Assembly: GCF_036321535.1 (NCBI RefSeq)
Contig: NC_087459.1
Coordinates: 28,954,001-29,018,000, forward strand
Source of the DNA: Camelus dromedarius
Taxonomy: Eukaryota
Length of the DNA: 64,000 nucleotides
Direction of reading: 5' to 3'
Shown: in pieces, positions 16,855 through 30,127 of the stretch
Numbering within the stretch: position 1 is the first letter of the stretch
How the letters are laid out: each line of letters begins with the position of its first letter
The notes under the pieces: generated by a model
Told to the model about the DNA's origin: nothing
Databases searched by the model: none
The model's input: only the letters and a program-made list of their open reading frames with translations
Translations under genes and position numbers: made by a program

Positions 16855-19800
16855 ATGAGTGGGGGCAAGAAGAAGAGTAGTTTCCAAATCACCAGCGTCA
16901 CCACGGACTATGAGGGTCCAGGGAGCCCAGGGGCTTCAGATCCCCCTGCCCTGCCAGGCCCCACCGGGCTCCAGCCCCGCCTGCCCAATGGGGAGCCCAA
17001 CCCTGAGCCAGGGGGCAAGGGCACCCCCCGGAACGGCTCCCCACCGCCTGGGGCCCCCGCCTCCCGTTTCCGGGTGGTGAAGCTGCCCCAAGGCCTGGGA
17101 GAGCCTTATCGCCGGGGCCGCTGGACATGTGTGGATGTTTACGAGAGAGACCTGGAGCCCCCTAGCTTCGGCCGGCTCCTGGAGGGAATTCGAGGGGCCT
17201 CAGGGGGCACCGGGGGCAGATCTTTGGATTCCAGGTTGGAGCTGGCCAGCTTGGGCCTGGGCGCCCCTATCCCACAGCCAGGCCTGTCTCAGGGCCCCAC
17301 CTCCTGGCTCCGCCCGCCCCCCACCTCCCCTGGACCTCAGGCCCGCTCCTTCACCGGGGGTCTGGGCCAACTGGCAGTGCCTGGCAAGGCCAAGGTGGAG
17401 ACACCCCCTCTGTCGGCCTCCCCACCCCAGCAGCGCCCCCCAGAGCCCGGGACAGGGGATAGCACGGGCACTTCCCGGGCCGCCACACCCCTGCCCTCAT
17501 TGAGGGTAGAAGGGGAGGCAGGGGGCTCAACAGCGGGAACCCCTCCACTGTCCCGTGCAAAGGATGGAGCCTTGCGGCTGAGGATGGAGTTGGTTGCTCC
17601 GGAGGAGATGGGGCAGGTAAGAGCTGGGTTCCAGGGTTGGGGAGACACCTGAGGGGTGGTGCTTGTCCATCTCGACCTTGGCCTCCACATCCATACTGCC
17701 CTCTCCCTGCTCCAGCGTCACCTGTCTGTCAGATCAGACAGCTCCTCTTTTTCCTGCCTGCCATCTCACTTAGAAGTTCATTCCTACTCCTCACATGGTC
17801 CTTGTTTTCTCTCTTAGGTTCCTTCTTCCCCACATTCTACACTTTCTTTCTCTTTGGCCTTTGATTTGTTGCTTTTGGTCCAAGTCTCCATCAGGTAGCC
17901 CAGTCCCGTCTCTCCATCATGGAGATGTGACTTCTTCCCTTTGGCCTTCATCTTCTGTCTTGGCCTCACTTCTTCAGGCATTCAGGGATAGAGGCCCCAG
18001 GCAGGGCTAGGGTGGTTGGGCTTTTGGGAGGGGAGCTGCCAGGGTTGGAGGTGAGGGGTAAAAAGTTGGCATTCCACTGTAAATCTCTCCTTTGTAGTCC
18101 CATGTCCAAGTGCGGTGGGCAACGGCAGGCCAGGGTGGGGAGAGGTCTTCCTTCTTTCTTCTTGTCATCCATCCCAGCCCCATCTCCAGCTTTGTCCAAA
18201 GTCAAATTTCTCAGAGACATTGAGGAATTGAGTTGGGGTGAGGGGACCCTTTACAAGGGTTTGGCTGGTTCATCCTTTCTACCCCAGTTGTCTATCTCAG
18301 TTCCCTGCATCTGGGCCTCTCCAGGATCAATCACTGAGGGTGGCCACCATGGAGTGGGAGAGAGGTGGGAAGCAGCCGAGAAAGACAAATCCTTTGCTCT
18401 TTCTGCTTCCTGTCTCCAAAAGAGGAACAAGTCTGGGCTGGGGGGCAGGAGGCCTGGGTCCTTGGGGTGGGGGGCAGGTAGCCAGGGATGTTGGATGTGT
18501 CTGTCCTGAAGGAGAAAATAACACCTTGGACACAGGAGGAAAGGCAGGGGGTGTGAGGATGAGAACTTTCCCCCTTCCTGGCCTTGGGCACAAACCACAG
18601 TATAAAAATAACCTGAGACTGTGTGTCTGGGCCCTGTCAAGACCGGTCAGGACCGGCTCCCCCCACCCCCTCCTTGCCTCAAACTCACATCTCTCATACC
18701 ACCCCCCAACTTTCCTTGAGTTCTTTCATTCAGTTCCTACCCCAGGGGAGAAGATGCTGTTTCCTTTACTGGTCCCTGTCCCCACACTCTTCCAAAGCAA
18801 GCCCTGTTTGCCCCCAACCTTGGCCCTCTCTATCCTTAGGCCCTGCCTGAGCTTCCCTTGGGCCTGCAATCCCTGCCCCTCTTTCCTCTGTGCTCCTAGC
18901 CCCCTTTCCTTCCCTCACACCATGATCTCTTCCTGAGTACATGCATCTGTGCTGCTGTTTCCCTGCCCCAAAGTCTGTCTTCCTTCTATACTCCCCCATG
19001 CCTCTTCTCCTAGGTTACCTCTAACAGGGGCCTGGAGGAGGGCCGGGAGCACTACCTGGGCTCCCTTCCTCTGTGTTGTCCCTCTAACCACCCTGGACTC
19101 TCTGTTCTTGGCTTTTCTGAGAAGCTGGGGCCTCCCGGGGCCTCACAGAAGCGTCTTGTTCCTGTGGCCCCCGCCCTTTTGCAGCCACCCCCAGCGCCTG
19201 TTGGCCTGTGTGGGTCCCCGCCCAGGCTCCGCCTCCCTCCATCCCAGAAACCACTCTCCCCTCATCCCTCCCCACAAGAGCCGACAGCGGGAGCAGAACT
19301 TCACCTGAGTCCGGAGAAGTTTGAGAACGAGAAGCTAGAATGGATAGAGGAGGGTTGGGGGAGGGAGGTGGAGGACCAGTTTCTGAGGATTCATTCATTC
19401 TACAAATAGCTATTGAACAAATTATAAGCTCTGTCCTCTGGAGCTTACCTTCCTGCAGCAGAGAGGCAAAAATACTTTAATTTCAGTAATATTAGATGCT
19501 ATAAAAAAATAGAGTTCAGTGGAATTCACTAGTCAAAGGATGGGGAAGTGCCTCTCTGAGGAAGTGATATTTGAGTCGCTTTAAGAAGTCAAGTGACAGA
19601 AGGCAGACACTCTCTGACTGGCCTCTGATTAGGGGTCCTGGTTCAGGTGGTGGAAGGATTTAGGAGTACAGACCAGAGCCCCTCTCTGGTACCCCATGAG
19701 CCATTTTTTGGAAGCCACTCACCCAGTCCTCAGGATGGTTGCTGTTTCCCTTGCCTCTAATACCTGCCCAATGCCTTCCCCAGAGCTGGGGGAAAGAAGG

Positions 19801-22800
19801 GCTGTAGGGGCAGGATGCCTGGGTCCTAAGTCCTTGTAAGACAGGGGATGTGTGGGGAGAGGTGGGAAGGGAGGAAGACCATTAGGTAAACGGTAAGGTG
19901 GCTGGATCTTTCTCTTGCTCGATGTGATGGTTCCTACCTCTCTATCTCCAGGTGCCCCCACTCGACTCTCGCCCCAGCTCCCCTGCCCTCTACTTCTTCC
20001 CTGATGCCAGTCTGGTTCACAAGTCTCCAGACCCCTTTGGAGCAGCGGCTGCCCAGAGCCTCAGCCTCGCCCGCTCCATGCTGGCCATCAGTGGCCACCT
20101 GGACAGCGATGATGATAGGTAGGTGGGCTCAGGCTCCCCACCCAGCATTTGGGATAGCCGCATGAAACTGCCTGGTGTCCTTCCCCCAACCTGAACTTGG
20201 AGAGGACTTCTTAAACAGAGAAGCCTGGCTTGGGCATAACACACTGGACAGTTGATTTGAGACCTACTCCCTCTCTGTGGAGAGAGCTGGGTGGAACTCC
20301 CTGGCTAGGATTGTCAAATCGTAGACTTTTTTAGAGTTTGAAGGGAGTCATTGTTGTCAAATTCCAGAGCTCTTGCAGATTTAGCGATCATCTGGCCAGT
20401 CCTAAGAATTTACTGGCAAATGTGCTGGAGAGGAGAATAGGGAGTCAGCCACCTCCCAGTTCTCCCTCTCCCTATGGAGGGCAATGGGATGCCTGTCTTT
20501 AGAGGTAACATCTTTATAGTCCATGCCAACTACTTTAGGATCCCGGGACCTCTAGTACCAAGAAAGCATGTCTCTAAGGTTTTGTTCTCTGCACTAGGAT
20601 CACCAAGGGGGCTGAGCCCTCCCCTGCAGCCAAGGCCAAGCCAAAGCTATGGCGAGGTGGGCTATTGGTGGCAGGGAAGGCATAAGAGACCAGGATCTGC
20701 TGAGGTTTGCCCTTCAGGGGAGAATGCCCTGTTCATGGCACGGTGGGCAGAACTTCCTGTTTCGAGGGCCAGGTTTCAACACAGGAGTGTCAGCAAGCTG
20801 AAGGGAGGAACAAAATCGCAAGTCAGATAGCCAAGCTGCTCCCTTCTGCCTGTGGACTGCTAGGAACCCACGCGAAGTGCCAGGGAGTCGCCCCTTTTAT
20901 TTTGGAGGGAGGAGTGGGACTTCCTGTTTGCAGCCCTCGGTGGGGAGGGACTTCCTGTTTGGAAGGCAGTAGGGGGCGGGGCTTAGTGGGTTCTGGGGGC
21001 CCTAGTCTGGAGGGGCGGAGGGGCGTCTCTCCTTCCTGCCTTCAACTCTCATGGCGCCACCCTCCCCAGAATCAGGGACTGAGTCCCACCAAAGAAGAGG
21101 GTCTGGGGCCTTGAGAGATAGCCGGGAGCCAGAGAGGAGAGGGAGTGATAGGAGGCGATGGGATGGAGGGCCAGGGGCCTGGTCCGGGGCGTGGGGAATG
21201 GAGGACAGAGCAAGGCTGGGCACAGCCGCTTCTGGGCTCCTTGCTCTAAGGAATGTGTGAGGTGTGAGGTCGGCCAGGGCCGAGAGAGTCACCTGCCCTC
21301 ATCGCTGCTATTCTCAGCACTTCCCACCCGCTCCCCCTCCCACTTGGGAGGTTCCCTGGCACAGGGCTCGCGTCCCTCCCCCACCCCTGTTGATTTCAGA
21401 GGCCAGCCTCCTGCTTTCTCTTAGAGAGTTTTGCCTCCAGAAGCCTCCGCAGCTCTGTTCTTTTTGGCTTGTCCCCTCCCTCCCTTCCTCCTCCTGTCCC
21501 ACCCCCTCGAACACCCCAGTCTGACCGGTCCGCCTCCCAGCCTCCACTTTACCCTGCTGAGCTCCAAGCCTCTGGGGCTTAAGCCCAGCCCAGCCCCTTC
21601 TGCTCCACCCTGCTGGGCCAGAGGATTTGGGCTGGGCCACCTCCTTGGCCCCCTGGAATGGGGCATGTAGCCCCCACCGCACCTCTCTTGTGTGCCCAGA
21701 GCTGGCAGAACAGGGTCTAAGTGGCATGAACCCTCCCTTTTGAGAGGGAAGGTGTGTTGGGGTGTTAAGTGCCTGAATCTCAAAGCTGGGGATACCTGAT
21801 CAATCCTAGAGTCTGGGGATAGGAGAACAGAGGGTGCATGGTAAGTTCAAGCTGGTCACACGCTCCTGGGTTGCCAAGAACCTTCATGTCCCCAACAGGG
21901 TCTGGCAGTTGGGAGGTACTTGAATAAGTTGATGGATGGGTGAGGGGATGGTTGGATGGCCCACATGGGGGATCCAGGCATTATACAGAATGAATTCCAG
22001 GAACTCAGGAAAGAAAATGTACATTTATTTATCCAGTGCTTCCTTGGGGTCAGGTGCTACCTCTTATCTCACATAATCCTAAGAGCAACCCCATGATCCC
22101 CACTTCCCAGATAAAGAAACTGAGACGCTGAGGAGGAAGATTCTAGAAACTTGCCTAAGGTCACCCAGCTAGTAAGTGGCAGGACTGCTGTCGGAGCCTA
22201 GGTCTGACCCCAAAGCCATATTCTCTCCACTTTCCTACTGGGATGCCTGTGTCCCAAGAGAAGAGGAGGAGGCAACCATCTCTGGGATGCCCTTTCTCTC
22301 CAGGACAGAAGCAGAGACAGCTCTCCCAATCCAGGCAAGGAGCCATCTTCCCCTCCTCCCTGCCCCGGTCCCGCCCCAAAGGCACCACAGATCCGGGAGG
22401 GAGTGTAGACAGGGCAGCCGGATGCCACTTTGTTGGCCTCAGGCCCAGCCCCTGGGGGCTCCTCAAAACACAGTGAGGGAGCAGGGCTGGCCCTTGTTCC
22501 CAGGATCAGAACCTCCCCACCTCTCCCAGGTGTCCTGCTTCTTTATCTTATCCTCATTTTGAGGCTGTTTCCTTTGACCTTCAAAAAGGAAGACCAACCT
22601 CTACCGCTGTCCTTGTCCCAGGACCTAAGAGTCCTGCAGGGCCAGAGCCCCCTGTTGTGCACGTCTCACACTGCACAGCTCCAGGGGGCGCCACTTACAT
22701 TTGAAGTCACTGTCGACACTTGAAGTCATGACAGTTTTCTGGAAGATGGCAATAAGTGTCTTGAAGAAGGGGGCATTTTGTTCTCTGACAAAGTTGCTTT

Positions 22801-24228
22801 GAGTTCTTGTGTGAAAGCTGATCTCATCCAGTCAACCCCAGGCTTCCTGCTCCTGACCCTGCTCAGGGATTCCAGTACAGTGCTGGTCCAAACAGAGGGC
22901 TTGGGTTGCCAGAGTCCTGGTCCCTTGAAGTGTTAATGTTAGAATGTGACAGCGGAAAAGTGCTGTCGAAAACTCTCCAGCGCTAGATAAACAGGAGATA
23001 ATCATCTTTTAGCCAACAAATGTTTATTGTTGTCTTATTCCTTTATTTCTGGCCAGCAGGAACAACTTAGTTGGCATCTTTACTGAGCATCCGCCAAGCA
23101 AGGCCAGTGTTCCTGTTCCTGTGAACCTGCCCCTCTTTGGTCTCTGTGTGTCCTGGGGGAGGGGGGACTCTGTGACACCCAGTCTCCACCCCAGTGTCTC
23201 AGATTGAAATAGCTTGAAAACTGTTTTGACTCTTCAGCTGGCTGGCCCGCCCTCCACTCAAACTTGTCCTCTCCCCCCAACCCCAGGAGTCCCAGATGTC
23301 CTTGCCCCAGCCCACCCTGTCCTGCTCTCTCAGGCCTGGTCACCCTCTTGGTTATTCCACCTGTCAGCGCCTTCTGCACCCAGAGCCTGGATGGGAAATG
23401 GAAAATTCCCAGTGCCCTCGTTCTCCCTTCCTTGCTGCAGGGCCTCATCCAAGGGTCACCTTGGATTGAGTGCTAATTCCCCCCACAGGGAAGCAGGTTG
23501 GAACTGACAACTAGGAGAGAGGGCTTGATAAGGGAGCACAAGGGTTGGGGCCGCCTTCTCGGAGAGGGGTGAAGCGGGGGGCTGGAGATCAGGACTGATG
23601 CTCCTGCAGTACTGGGGGGCATGGGTGGAGGGCTGGCCCTGGGGCTGGGGCAGCTGAGGCAGAAGCTGGACAAGGGTGGGTGGTGAGACATGGGGTGAGG
23701 CAGGAACATGGGCTGAGTGGTGGGGAGAGGGAGCCTTGGAGGATAGGACAGGGTGCAAAGGACTGTGCAGGCCCTGGGCCACAGAGAGACAGGCTTGAGG
23801 GAGAGCCAGGTACAGGACCCAGAGACTGGCTCTGGGGACCGTTGAGCCAGGCCTGAGTCGACCTCTGGTGGCCACTTAACAAACTGCAGCCAGACCCGCT
23901 CTCCCTGTCTTCCGCTCCCAGGGGTCTTCAAAGCCCCTGCTCCTGGTCCCAGTATCCCACCTGCAGACTCACCGTCCCATCCTCTCCTCAAGCTCTTGTG
24001 CCCTGCGAGGCCCCAGACACCAGACTCCGGTCCCAGGCTCAGACTGTGCTTGTCTTGTAGGCTCGGTCTCCGTTGCCATGGTAACCTTTTTCATTCCTCC
24101 TCACCCTTACCATGGGAGATGGGGGACCCTCTAGCTAGGCCCCATGGATCACCTGTGATATGGGCTTTGTGTTTTGGGGAGATGCTCATAGTCCCAAGAA
24201 GACTGCAGGCACATTAGAGACACCCCCT

Positions 24229-24268
<40 letters not shown>

Positions 24269-25924
24269 CCCATCAGCGCCACTCACTTTCTTCCCTCCCA
24301 GCTGGGAGCAGCTGCAGCCTCGAGGGAGGCCAGTGTTCATCCAGAGGGGTCAAGATGGGGTCAGAGGTGGGAAGAGGCTTCCCAGGAGCAGTCTCTCCCT
24401 CACCCTTCACACCCCTCCCTGGCCCAGGCCTCTGGCCCCGCAGCCCCTCCTCCATCCCGGCCCACCAGCTGACTTTCCTCAGCCGGCCCCCTCCCCTCTG
24501 CTCTGGGATTGGTGCCAGGGTGAGAAGGGGACACTGGCACTGACCGTGTCTGGGAATTCCCGCCCACCATGGAGCTGGCGGGAGGGGGTCCCCGTGTCCC
24601 TGAGGAGCCAATAGCAGCCAGGCTTTGCCCTGTGGGGTGGTGTATATCTTTCAGGCCAGCACCCCCTAGGCACCATCTCCTTTCTGCCTGCCTGGCACCA
24701 GCCAGACTCTACTCTGCCCGGGGGGCTTTGAGCCCCCCAGGCAGTCCTGATATAGCCTTCTCCCTCTGGGGAGGCCTGAGGACCCTTTCCCCTTGGGGAT
24801 GGCCCAGCCAGGGGTCTCTGTCAAGTCCCTGGTGTCCTCATATGAGACCCGGGTAGTGGGGATGGCTCCAGGGCCTCCCCGGAAAAGGGGCTGTGTCTCC
24901 TCTCCTTGCTCCCCTCGGGGAGCATCCCCCATCCGAGGGCCATCTGGACCCCCACCCTACCGGGGCCCAGGGGGGCCCGGACAGCGGCCCTCACCCCGCC
25001 GGGGGATGGACAAAACCCTTCTCTCCCTGATTCTCTACTGTCACAGGTACAGGCAGGGATGTGGGTGGGAGGCTGCAGTGAATGGGGCTTGTGGAGGAGG
25101 CCAGAGCCTGCTCTGAGAAGCACCTGGAAGGCAGCAGGCTGGGGTATCCAGACACCTGGCTTGGCACCTGCTCCTCCTCTTCCTCCTGCTCCTCCTCCTC
25201 CTCACCTCTCGTCTCCCTGTGTCTCTCCAGTGGCTCCGGAAGCCTGGTTGGCATTGACAACAAGATCGAACAAGCCATGGTAAGAGAAGCCATTCTGGTC
25301 CTAGCAGGTCCCAGCTCACGTGCTGAATCCCAGGCCCTGCGTCCATTAGCCGGCCCAATGCTCCATCCCTGCTGTCCTCATTATTAGGGAATACTGACTC
25401 CCAGCTCCTCAGCCTGCTCCTAGTTGAGTTCCTGCACCCCCTTGCCTCCACCTGAGCCCTTTACGTTTCTTGGTTCCCACCCTGGCTCCTGGCCCCCATG
25501 TCTGTCTTTGGCCCTGGCCTTCCCTCTGTCCAGCATCCATGCCCACCTTCATACCCCACGCCCTGTCCCTTCCCTGTTTTACTTCTTCCCCAGTGGTCCC
25601 CCATCATCTGGGAGCAGGAGGCTCTCTCACACCCAGCTCCTCAAGGCACTGGGCAGGTGATGAGGTTGGGGTGGCCTGGGACCCCTGACGTTTTGCCTGT
25701 CCCTGGACCCCCAGGATTTGGTGAAGTCCCACCTCATGTTTGCGGTCCGGGAGGAGGTGGAGGTGCTGAAGGAGCAGATCCGGGACCTGGCTGAGCGGAA
25801 TGCCGCGCTGGAGCAGGAGAATGGACTGCTGCGTGCCTTGGCCAGCCCCGAGCAGCTGGCCCAGCTGCCTTCCTCCGGGGTTCCGCGGCTTGGGCCCCCG
25901 GCGCCCAACGGGCCCTCCGTCTGA
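16855..25924 (+). CDS. TSC22D4: TSC22 domain family member 4, long isoform (395 aa); coding exons 16855-17616, 19952-20118, 25231-25279, 25715-25924
   Basis: N-terminal motifs [15 protein letters not shown] and RFRVVKL...[14 protein letters not shown] box and leucine zipper [52 protein letters not shown] junctions with phases 0,2,0 sum to 395 codons plus stop. Confidence 0.98.
22060..22210 (-). mobile_element. MIR fragment
   Basis: cagataaagaaactgagacg...cttgcctaaggtcacccagctagtaagtggcag. Confidence 0.7.
24072..24085. promoter_or_regulatory. RFX X-box in TSC22D4 intron 3
   Basis: GTTGCCATGGTAAC. Confidence 0.6.
24231..24266. repeat. (AC)18 microsatellite
   Basis: Directly visible, in TSC22D4 intron 3. 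Confidence 0.95.
24799..25046 (+). CDS. TSC22D4: Putative alternative first coding exon of TSC22D4 ([18 protein letters not shown]...[13 protein letters not shown]|S), giving a 168-aa short isoform
   Basis: Strong Kozak gggATGg, 82 open codons, then CACAG|GTACAG donor in phase 2, matching the phase-2 acceptor at 25231. The C-terminal end resembles the long TSC22D3 isoform exon as recalled. Confidence 0.7.
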
Positions 25925-26345: not shown

Positions 26346-26369
26346 ATTAAAATAATAATTATAATTAAA
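26346..26369 (+). terminator. TSC22D4 poly(A) signals (two ATTAAA)
   Basis: ATTAAA at 26346-26351 and 26364-26369 in an AT-rich patch about 420 nt after the stop. Confidence 0.7.
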
Positions 26370-27601: not shown

Positions 27602-30127
27602 ATGGCTGCGGTTGTGAGGTTTTTCCGATGGATTTGGCGCAAGATTAGTCGCTGGGTGAGTTTCAGAGACTGCCTCTTCCTCTTGACATGCTGGGGTGAG
27701 CAATACTGGTCCATGACCTTTAGATCACAGAACCCCATCCCCCACTCCCTCACCTGGCCTCCCTCTCCTCCTGGCCTCCTGTGGCCAAACAAGACGGGGA
27801 AGGAGGAGGTGAGGGACAGGACTATCGGGGAGGAGGCCAGGACAGTCACTGCCCCTTCTCCTCTGGGTCTTCTCTTCTGCTCACTGTTGTCTCTTGATCT
27901 GCCCCCTCTCCTGTCTCTCCTTGTCTTAGCTTTTCTTCTGGAAACACAAAGCTAAGTCAACCGTCATAGAACACACTGATTCCAAGAAAAATGTTTCGAA
28001 GGTAGATAAGGCTTCCAAGGTGGTTGAGACTTTGAAGTTGGTTGAGCCCGCCAAAGAGGCTAAGGCCTCCAAGATGGATGTGTCCCCCAAAGTGGCTGAT
28101 CCCTGCACGTTGGCCAAGACCACCACGGATGGAGCTGCGGTGGAAGCAGGCCAAGGGAGAAGATCGCTGTTGCAGCTGCCACAGACTGCTGTCAAATCCG
28201 TCTCCGCGCTCATGGTCTCAGCCCTGCAGTCTGGCTGGCAGATGTGCAGCTGGAAGGTCAGCACCATAACTCCTTGTCCCCAACAGCCCTCCCACCCCCC
28301 CATCTCCCATCACTCATTCATGCTGGTCAGAGTATCAAATGGTGTGGTCACTCTGGAAAAACAGTTTGGTTGGTTCTTATAAAACTAAACCTACAATTAT
28401 CATATGGCCCAGTGAGTGTACTCTTGGGTGTTTATCCCCAGATATATGAGATTTTACGTTCACACAAAAATCTGGATTTGAATGGTTATAGCAGCTTTGT
28501 TCATCACAGTCCAAACCAACCCAAATGTCCTTCAGTGGGTGGATGGTTAAACTGTGATAATCCATACCGTGGAATGCTTCTCCGCCATAAAAAGGGACAA
28601 ACTGCAACAACTTGGATGGATCTCAAAGGAATTATGCTGAGTGAAAACCACCAGTCCCCAAAGGTTATAGATCGTATGATTCTATTTATATTATATACCA
28701 TTCTTGCAATAACAAAATGATAGAAGTGAGCTCCAATTAGTGGTTTAGTGGTCGCCAGGGGCTGCGTGCGGAGGGGGAGAGAGGGGAGGTGAGTTGGTTA
28801 CAAATGGGCAACATGAGGAATCTTTGTGTTGCTGTAAATCTCCTGTGTCTTGAATATGGCAGTTAGATACATGAACCTGCACATGTGATATAAAATTGGG
28901 TAGAATTCAACACACGTGCACACACACACACACAAAGTACAAAGTAAAACTGGGAAATAGGAATACATTCAGATCAGTGTATTGTATTGATGTCAGTATC
29001 CTCTGATATTGTACTAGAGTTTTGAAAGATTTTACTTTGGGGGAAATGGTTAAAGAGTATACACAAACTCTATTATTTCTCACAACTGCATGTCGATCAA
29101 TAATTATCTCCAAGTCACAATTTTCATTTTAAAAAGGGAAGGTCTAGATCACTGCCAAGTAAGCTTATTTGGCCTTGAATAAAGTACTACTGCATTACCA
29201 ATAATTTTCAAAAGTTTACCTGACTGCCCTGTGGAGGGAAGTCAGAAGGGGCCAAGATGAGACAGGCAGGAGGATCCATTGGAGGTGTTGCAGGCCAGGC
29301 TCAGAGGAAAGAATGTTCTGGATGGGGAGAGAGGCACCAGGTAGAACAAGTTAATGGATCAGAGCGATATTTAAAAGGTGGAATTGTTGTACTGGGTGGT
29401 TGATTGGGTGACAGTGAGGGGAGAGGGAGAGACAGAAGTCAGAGCAGGATGGAGACATTCACTGAGAGCAGGGGCAGACTTAGGGGAGAAAGTGACACGT
29501 TTAGGGTGGACATCTGCAGGGAGATGTCTAGGAGGCAGTGGGATATACAGGCCTGGAGGTCAGGAGAGAGCTTTGGGTTGGAGACAGAGGTCAGGGTGAC
29601 CTTTATTTTGATATGCTCTCCATGGAACCCTGGTGGGGACTCAGACAAGGTCCCTGTCTTCCAGAAGGTTGTATTCTTCTATTGAAAACATGAATCTACA
29701 GAACAAATAATGTAGAAAATGTGGTATGGGTGAACACAAGAGTAGAGACAGCCCAAGAAGGCTTCCCGGAGGAGGCAGTGCCAAGCTGAGGCCTGACAGA
29801 GGAGGTGGAATTAGAAAAACCTTTGCTGTTTATCTGCAGGTGGTTCCACCAGCACCATGCTATTCATGTGTGCTTATCTTCTCTCTTTCACAGTCATCCG
29901 TGAGTTCTACCTCAGTTGCCTCCCAAATGAAGACTGGATCCCCTTTGGAGTCGCGGGAGGCTGAGATGCTACGGGAAGTGTACTTGGTGCTGTGGGCCAT
30001 TCGGAAACAACTGCGGCAGCTGGCCCGCAGGCAGGAGAGGCGGCGAAGGCGCTACATCCGGGCCCACACTTGCTCCCAAACTGACCCAGTTCAGGGCCTG
30101 AAACAGGATGCCCGGAGTCCTCTCTAG
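27602..30127 (+). CDS. SPACDR: Sperm acrosome developmental regulator (C7orf61 orthologue, 204 aa); exons 27602-27655, 27930-28256, 29894-30127
   Basis: MAAVVRFFRWIWRKISRW|LFFWKHK...SLLQLPQTAVKSVSALMVSALQSGWQMCSWK|SSVSS...EVYLVLWAIRKQL... matches the recalled human C7orf61. GT-AG junctions, all phase 0, and syntenic position. Confidence 0.92.
28330..29130 (+). mobile_element. L1 (L1MB/MC-like) 3' fragment in SPACDR intron 2
   Basis: ctggaaaaacagtttggttggttcttataaaactaaac...ccaaatgtccttcagtggg...tggatggatctcaaaggaattatgctgagtgaaa. Confidence 0.75.
29200..29600 (-). mobile_element. L2 fragment
   Basis: ggagatgtctaggaggcagtgggatatacaggcctggaggtcaggagag is a typical antisense L2 phrase. Confidence 0.5.

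Follow-up and report, generated by a model that had tools for sequence, protein, structure and literature searches.

Does TSC22D4 carry, upstream of the exon that encodes its TSC box, a first exon of its own for a short protein, and is such an exon related to the first coding exon of the long GILZ isoform (L-GILZ) of TSC22D3? We addressed this question in a stretch of 64,000 nucleotides of Camelus dromedarius (contig NC_087459.1, positions 28,954,001 to 29,018,000 of the forward strand; hereafter, the window), starting from an original prediction that described positions 24799-25046 as a hidden, L-GILZ-like first exon. This segment forms the coding portion of an alternative TSC22D4 first exon, and the short protein that begins in it has 168 residues. 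The reading as a whole, that is, a TSC22D4 first exon driven by an internal promoter, spliced 25046>25231>25715 and yielding a 168-aa isoform with an L-GILZ-like end of the private exon and a proposed damping role, is in our assessment highly probable.

The elements from which the original prediction was assembled, namely an ATG in a strong Kozak context, 82 open codons, an AG/GTACAG donor and a phase match to the exon at 25231, are all present. On the plus strand, ATG 24799-24801 lies within GGGGATGG, with G at both −3 and +4, and is followed by 82 sense codons, the last of which is CAC (His) at 25042-25044, and then by AG/GTACAG, with the donor GT at 25047-25048. An in-frame TGA is located 16 codons 5′ of this ATG (24748-24750), and no ATG was found within 24660-24798. 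When 25046 is joined to 25231, AG and T form a split Ser codon in phase with the TSC-box exon, and splicing of 24799-25046, 25231-25279 and 25715-25924 gives the predicted 168 aa, identical residue for residue to the annotated Camelus protein XP_074201896.1 / KAB1263100.1 (P0026). The long form, rebuilt from 16855-17616, 19952-20118 and the two common exons, has 395 aa and one terminal stop; its exon 19952-20118, which ends in ...SGHLDSDDD, is the long-form exon that had been missing, and the rodent-conserved blocks 23320-23526 and 23822-23899, considered as coding exons, contain no open frame.

Table 1 Features of the TSC22D4 locus in the camel window, in window positions
Feature	Position	Strand	Remarks
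Long isoform, first coding exon; skipped by the short isoform	16855-17616	+	Holds RFRV and RWTC
Long isoform, second coding exon	19952-20118	+	Enters 25231 in the phase used by the alternative exon
Palindromic RFX-type X-box GTTGCCATGGTAAC	24072-24085	.	Strict pattern match; about 570 nt 5′ of the TATA-like box
κB-like perfect palindrome GGGAATTCCC, followed by a GC box	24552-24561	.	Identical in camel, sheep, bat, Onychomys and rat
CCAAT box of the predicted internal promoter	24608-24612	+	Kept in 5 of 6 genomic sequences
TATA-like element TATATCT	24643-24649	+	GGTGTATATCT conserved in 5 species
Alternative first exon, 5′ untranslated part	24663-24798	+	Contig 5′ ends; start approximate
Alternative first exon, coding part	24799-25046	+	82 codons and 2 nt of the split Ser codon
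Intron between alternative exon and TSC-box exon, 184 nt, GT...AG	25047-25230	+	Absent from all 11 mRNA contigs
TSC-box exon, common to short and long isoforms	25231-25279	+	Translation, mRNA contigs
Last coding exon, common to both isoforms: leucine zipper, 69 codons and stop	25715-25924	+	
3′ UTR of TSC22D4	ends at about 26388	+	ATTAAA at 26346 and 26364

Splicing of the alternative exon was observed in 11 Logan contigs from 11 sequencing runs of other mammals (L002, L003, L011-L019), all of which join 25046>25231>25715 and share 87-94% nucleotide identity with the window over the alternative exon. Seven of these contigs (L002, L011-L013, L015-L017) reach the leader, with 5′ ends that map to 24663-24713 and are ends of contigs rather than mapped cap sites; none of the 11 extends 5′ of 24663 or is joined to upstream exons. 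The contigs start 20-70 nt 3′ of the TATA-like element, which would put the onset of transcription at approximately 24663-24713, directly 3′ of a predicted CCAAT/TATA-like promoter that lies within the final long intron of the long form. Camel, sheep, bat, Onychomys and rat all share the conserved promoter block, whose κB-like palindrome (24552), CCAAT box (24608) and TATA-like box (24643) have the anatomy of a predicted internal promoter. The κB-like palindrome lies about 90 nt 5′ of the TATA-like box within this conserved block and may be a functional site; a second κB-like match, GGGGGTCCCC, occurs at 24584. In Fukomys damarensis (KN121214.1, L007:1-1500), the sequence 5′ of the ATG fails to align with the promoter block that the other five species share, which may reflect an assembly join or a lineage-specific replacement.

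As to the tissue in which the short isoform is made, the X-box that the original prediction had noted upstream is indeed present, with one-mismatch versions at the corresponding site of sheep, bat and rat, and its suggested tie to testis is conjectural. What hints there are favour brain: contig L015 was assembled from run SRR13731458, a metagenomic data set of a rabid cat, from which brain tissue alone was available (PMC8540014). For the camel itself, 14 runs that are probably RNA contain 95-100% of the exon words sampled, and these words could also derive from pre-mRNA; expression of the short isoform in this species is thus supported by orthologues, the RefSeq annotation and these 14 runs.

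An open frame of 82 codons is by itself weak evidence of coding because, at 66.5% GC, the chance that such a stretch contains no stop is about 14% by a hand estimate; conservation of the frame and the spliced mRNA contigs lift it above chance. Orthologous exons from the sheep, horseshoe bat, Onychomys, Fukomys and rat genomes were analyzed together with the mRNA contigs. In the proposed frame, pairwise dN/dS (Nei-Gojobori) ranged from 0.04 to 0.27; in the two other frames it ranged from 0.65 to 8.4 and was mostly above 1. For codons 1-69 taken separately, the median was 0.14. Variable sites are distributed over the three codon positions as 24/13/57 among 13 distinct sequences, the 246 nt of the exon are free of indels in 15 mammalian sequences, and the AG/GTAC donor is kept in 6 genomes and in a turtle. 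The original prediction had named conservation of the ORF with dN/dS below 1 across mammals as one of its checks, and these values agree with it.

The same values bear on the possibility that the frame is open by chance, within an intronic promoter or a non-coding first exon rich in GC, and that translation starts at Met70 or does not occur at all. Open stretches of this length are not rare at this base composition, and gene callers run on the Logan contigs reported only a 99-aa product from Met70. However, dN/dS is far below 1 in the proposed frame only, and this includes codons 1-69, which precede Met70; Met70 itself is replaced by Val, Ala or Ile in several species, so that the start is assigned to Met1; and ATG 24799 and its context are conserved between species, whereas the leader 5′ of it contains a 1-nt indel (alignment A3), as fits non-coding sequence. 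A chance ORF is therefore very hard to credit, and the alternative exon is coding and subject to purifying selection. The ATG at 24569-24571 was rejected as a start because in the window it does not share the frame of the alternative exon and is located 5′ of the TATA-like box. The 246-aa sheep RefSeq model XP_070145590.1 (L004) starts at the ATG that matches 24569 (MEPAGGG...), which is in frame in bovids, and its N-terminal extension is not conserved.

Protein searches detected the same exon in Tasmanian devil and platypus, and a diverged copy, located 5′ of the TSC-box exon and the last exon and ending in the same AG/GTAC donor, was found in the turtle Platysternon; thus, the exon, present in mammals including devil and platypus as well as in a turtle, is at least amniote-wide. 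The turtle copy (Platysternon megacephalum, GCA_003942145.1, L001:3001-3275) is deposited as TFJ98469.1, 'transmembrane protein PVRIG-like'; the record actually represents the alternative first exon of TSC22D4, translated beyond its donor.

Contrary to the description of the exon as hidden, it is already included in RefSeq, Ensembl and UniProt, and the expectation that it may exist as an annotated minor isoform was borne out in many species, Camelus and human included. The 168-aa isoform is listed for human (UniProt H7BZ77), chimpanzee, gorilla, macaques and New World monkeys, for bear, alpaca, pangolin, bats, donkey, squirrels, beaver, guinea pig, chinchilla and mole rats, and also for devil and platypus; the rat entry has 174 aa. 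The entries for alpaca (XP_072799313.1, isoform X2), pangolin (XP_036867707.1, isoform X3), rat (EDM13241.1) and human (H7BZ77) represent the same object, and the other annotated entries aligned with the window product (alignment A4) are 87-96% identical to it. The annotated 168-aa entries show no structural difference from the window product and are automatic or unreviewed. Most TSC22D4 short isoforms (P0002, P0003, P0017 and others) are auto-named 'TSC22 domain family protein 3' in UniProt/UniRef, which is the wrong paralogue.

Thus, the exon and its product are already known and do not constitute a new gene feature. In the literature searched (for the isoform, H7BZ77 and peptide strings), no paper describing a short TSC22D4 isoform was found, and a published isoform table gives 395, 310 and 195 aa as the only TSC22D4 forms (PMC8536140). 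Exact look-ups of three of the protein sequences (P0026, P0027, P0015) among contigs gave no match, and the Atlas search gave family-level matches only. What is added here is support for the automatic models, in the form of purifying selection, evidence of spliced transcripts, conservation of the predicted promoter and the depth of the exon in amniotes, together with a tested link between the terminal helix of the exon and the L-GILZ exon. About 2 kb 3′ of TSC22D4 and on the same (plus) strand lies the C7orf61 orthologue (window positions 27933-28367 and 29927-30124). In Ensembl-derived proteins of dog and meerkat (P0053, P0054; 284 aa), the alternative exon and the TSC-box exon are followed by C7orf61 (PF15775/DUF4703); these proteins are read-through chimeras in which the leucine zipper is replaced.

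In the 168-aa product, the single Pfam match is PF01166 at residues 99-153 (E = 3.4 × 10−28; 98 bits against a cut-off of 30), in keeping with the original claim that the TSC box and zipper are retained. The further claim, that the NRBP1/WNK-docking motifs are lost, also holds: in a regular-expression scan, R-φ motifs, which tie long TSC22D proteins to NRBP1/WNK (PMC12266109), were present only in the long form (RFRV at 71 and RWTC at 89), and none was found in the 168-aa product. The product accordingly has the make-up of the short-isoform class, with the TSC box and zipper, a private first exon and neither the N-terminal boxes of the long isoforms nor R-φ motifs. In an AlphaFold2 model built on a 26-sequence alignment, residues 1-70 are predicted to be disordered, the conserved motif forms a short helix (72-82, pLDDT about 69), and a Ser/Gly linker leads from it to the TSC-box/zipper helix (88-141, pLDDT 82-96). 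Within the disordered part, R30-G31-C32, S35-P36, R40, S43-P44 and R46 do not vary between turtle and mammals.

The end of the L-GILZ private exon, as given in the original prediction, was compared with actual sequences. In a scan of metagenome contigs with a degenerate DNA pattern for this motif, one match (L010) proved to be the first exon of a fish TSC22D3; the second match of the same scan (L009) was a chance match. With the L010 exon as query, 402 L-GILZ-type proteins were found, and among those inspected that are spliced to the TSC-box exon, all end the private exon with ...NIDQTMLSILLFFH, which confirms the original prediction on this point. The supposedly common 'MAQ' start proved to be coincidental, given that fish L-GILZ starts with MSD or MTE and turtle TSC22D4 with MALE. 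L-GILZ is similar to the TSC22D4 short isoform in that a private first coding exon enters a homologous TSC-box exon in the same phase, and the two share an exon end of the form I/M-D-Q/K-T-M/L-L-S-I/L-L/I-L-F/Y-F/C-H (fish P0181, P0191, P0086 and others, and L010); the TSC22D4 exon has an end of the I-D-Q-T-M-L-S-I-L-L-F-F-H type directly before the TSC-box exon.

When 14 TSC22D4 exons (alignment A1) were compared with 13 L-GILZ exons (alignment A2) using hhalign, only the last 15 columns aligned (P = 2.9 × 10−5, probability 74%). The end-anchored BLOSUM62 score, 40 for camel and 51 for turtle, was reached by none of 200,000 shuffles, and D71, L75 and H82 are invariant in the joint TSC22D4/L-GILZ alignment. 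The turtle exon is the best match to the L-GILZ HMM (E = 4.3 × 10−6 for one sequence) and contains RGCGCCS, a weak collinear match to the L-GILZ Cys cluster (i-E = 0.011) in a segment that is absent in mammals. The cluster proper, CRSPxGLDCCSCCLDL, is missing from all mammalian TSC22D4 copies, with a weak CC motif in turtle only, and the central block of L-GILZ, HFRQLR...NLNTDKLNNIMRQDSLESVVRDPCFLLNEGIC, has no counterpart in the TSC22D4 exon by either hhalign or hmmsearch. Unlike L-GILZ, the mammalian TSC22D4 exon is Pro/Ser/Arg/Gly-rich and predicted to be disordered. Given that nothing aligns beyond the terminal motif, the TSC22D4 exon is to be regarded as a paralogue with a common terminal helix and not as the L-GILZ orthologue. 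At the level of sequence, the L-GILZ resemblance is real and, in mammals, limited to the last 15 or so residues.

Two explanations of this resemblance have to be weighed. The TSC22D4 and L-GILZ exons probably descend from one ancestral alternative first exon, the rest of which has diverged; common descent is likely because of the same position, the same phase, the specific terminal motif and the turtle intermediate. Alternatively, the likeness could be convergent, with a hydrophobic helix favoured in front of the TSC box and the two exons arising independently. The short extent of the similarity is compatible with convergence, inasmuch as 14-17 residues align in mammals and no likeness is detectable in the rest of the 82 aa; phmmer with the 82-aa exon against 1.84 billion representatives retrieved TSC22D4 copies only and no TSC22D3, and residues 58-100 of the bear isoform, used as query in a word-index search, likewise gave no TSC22D3. 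In addition, the motif is predicted to form a helix adjoining that of the TSC box, which makes a structural constraint plausible. The long-form exon, however, meets the same junction and ends differently (...SGHLDSDDD), and no 14-mer of the long-form N-terminus scores above 13, compared to 40-51 for the motif of the alternative exon. The identity of exon boundary and phase, and the turtle copy, which is nearer to L-GILZ and has a collinear G-x-x-C-C-S motif, also speak against independent origins, and convergence appears improbable. With common descent as the preferred explanation, the original proposal of a paralogous exon kept from the family duplications is supported by the same junction, phase and terminal motif, and is weakened by the restriction of the alignment to about 15 terminal residues in mammals.

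In having a TSC box and zipper and in lacking the long disordered, R-φ-containing N-terminus, the short TSC22D4 isoform resembles the classical short isoforms of the family, TSC22D1.2 (TSC-22) and GILZ (TSC22D3-2), which are internal-promoter products. The private exons of TSC22D1.2 and GILZ carry a motif of the F-S-I-S-F-F/L-S-S-L-L-G type, unlike the TSC22D4 alternative exon. It is the end of the long-form exon 19952-20118 that presumably resembles the F-S-I-S-F-F-S-S-L-L-G motif of TSC-22 and GILZ; if this resemblance holds, TSC22D4 would carry relatives of both kinds of N-terminal motif of the family.

With regard to function, the short protein would dimerize through its zipper with long TSC22D proteins and, as it is devoid of the NRBP1/WNK-docking motifs, would damp or divert their action. 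Short TSC22D isoforms are reported to oppose long ones (PMC12266109), and the functional model used here is that of Drosophila Bunched, in which the short BunB and BunC, products, like the TSC22D4 short form, of a single TSC22-family locus, interfere with the long BunA in a dominant-negative manner (PMC2253523). This antagonism is established in flies and is an analogy for TSC22D4, and we give dimerization with damping or diversion a chance that approaches even. Conceivably, the short isoform is not mainly an antagonist and has a function of its own through the conserved disordered N-terminus, for example, as a phospho-regulated docking region with the core R-K-R-G-C..S-P-C-S-P-R-G.S-P-I-R, in parallel to L-GILZ with its own partners. 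Codons 1-69 are constrained like the motif, with the median dN/dS given above, and the Arg, Cys and Ser-Pro positions listed above are invariant from turtle to mammals; such constraint on the N-terminus goes beyond the needs of a pure zipper-only blocker. L-GILZ is, moreover, reported to bind p53/MDM2, according to work cited in PMC12838652. Against such a function stand the lack of any Pfam family match in the N-terminal region and its predicted disorder. We see an independent function of this kind as a possibility worth keeping in mind, with the balance of probability somewhat against it. The strong constraint on the disordered N-terminus suggests that the short form has partners of its own as well.

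The WNK/NRBP1 field treats TSC22D4 as a 'long' adaptor only, and recent studies use the 395-aa form. A broader picture, in which an amniote-wide, possibly brain-enriched short TSC22D4 with its own promoter, bearing a helix that is a relic of the time before the TSC22D3/TSC22D4 split, would act as a brake on TSC22D-NRBP1-WNK scaffolds, is tentative and, taken in full, rather doubtful. As a modest lead, a conserved short form without R-φ motifs is a reasonable candidate for a modulator of cell-volume and WNK signalling.
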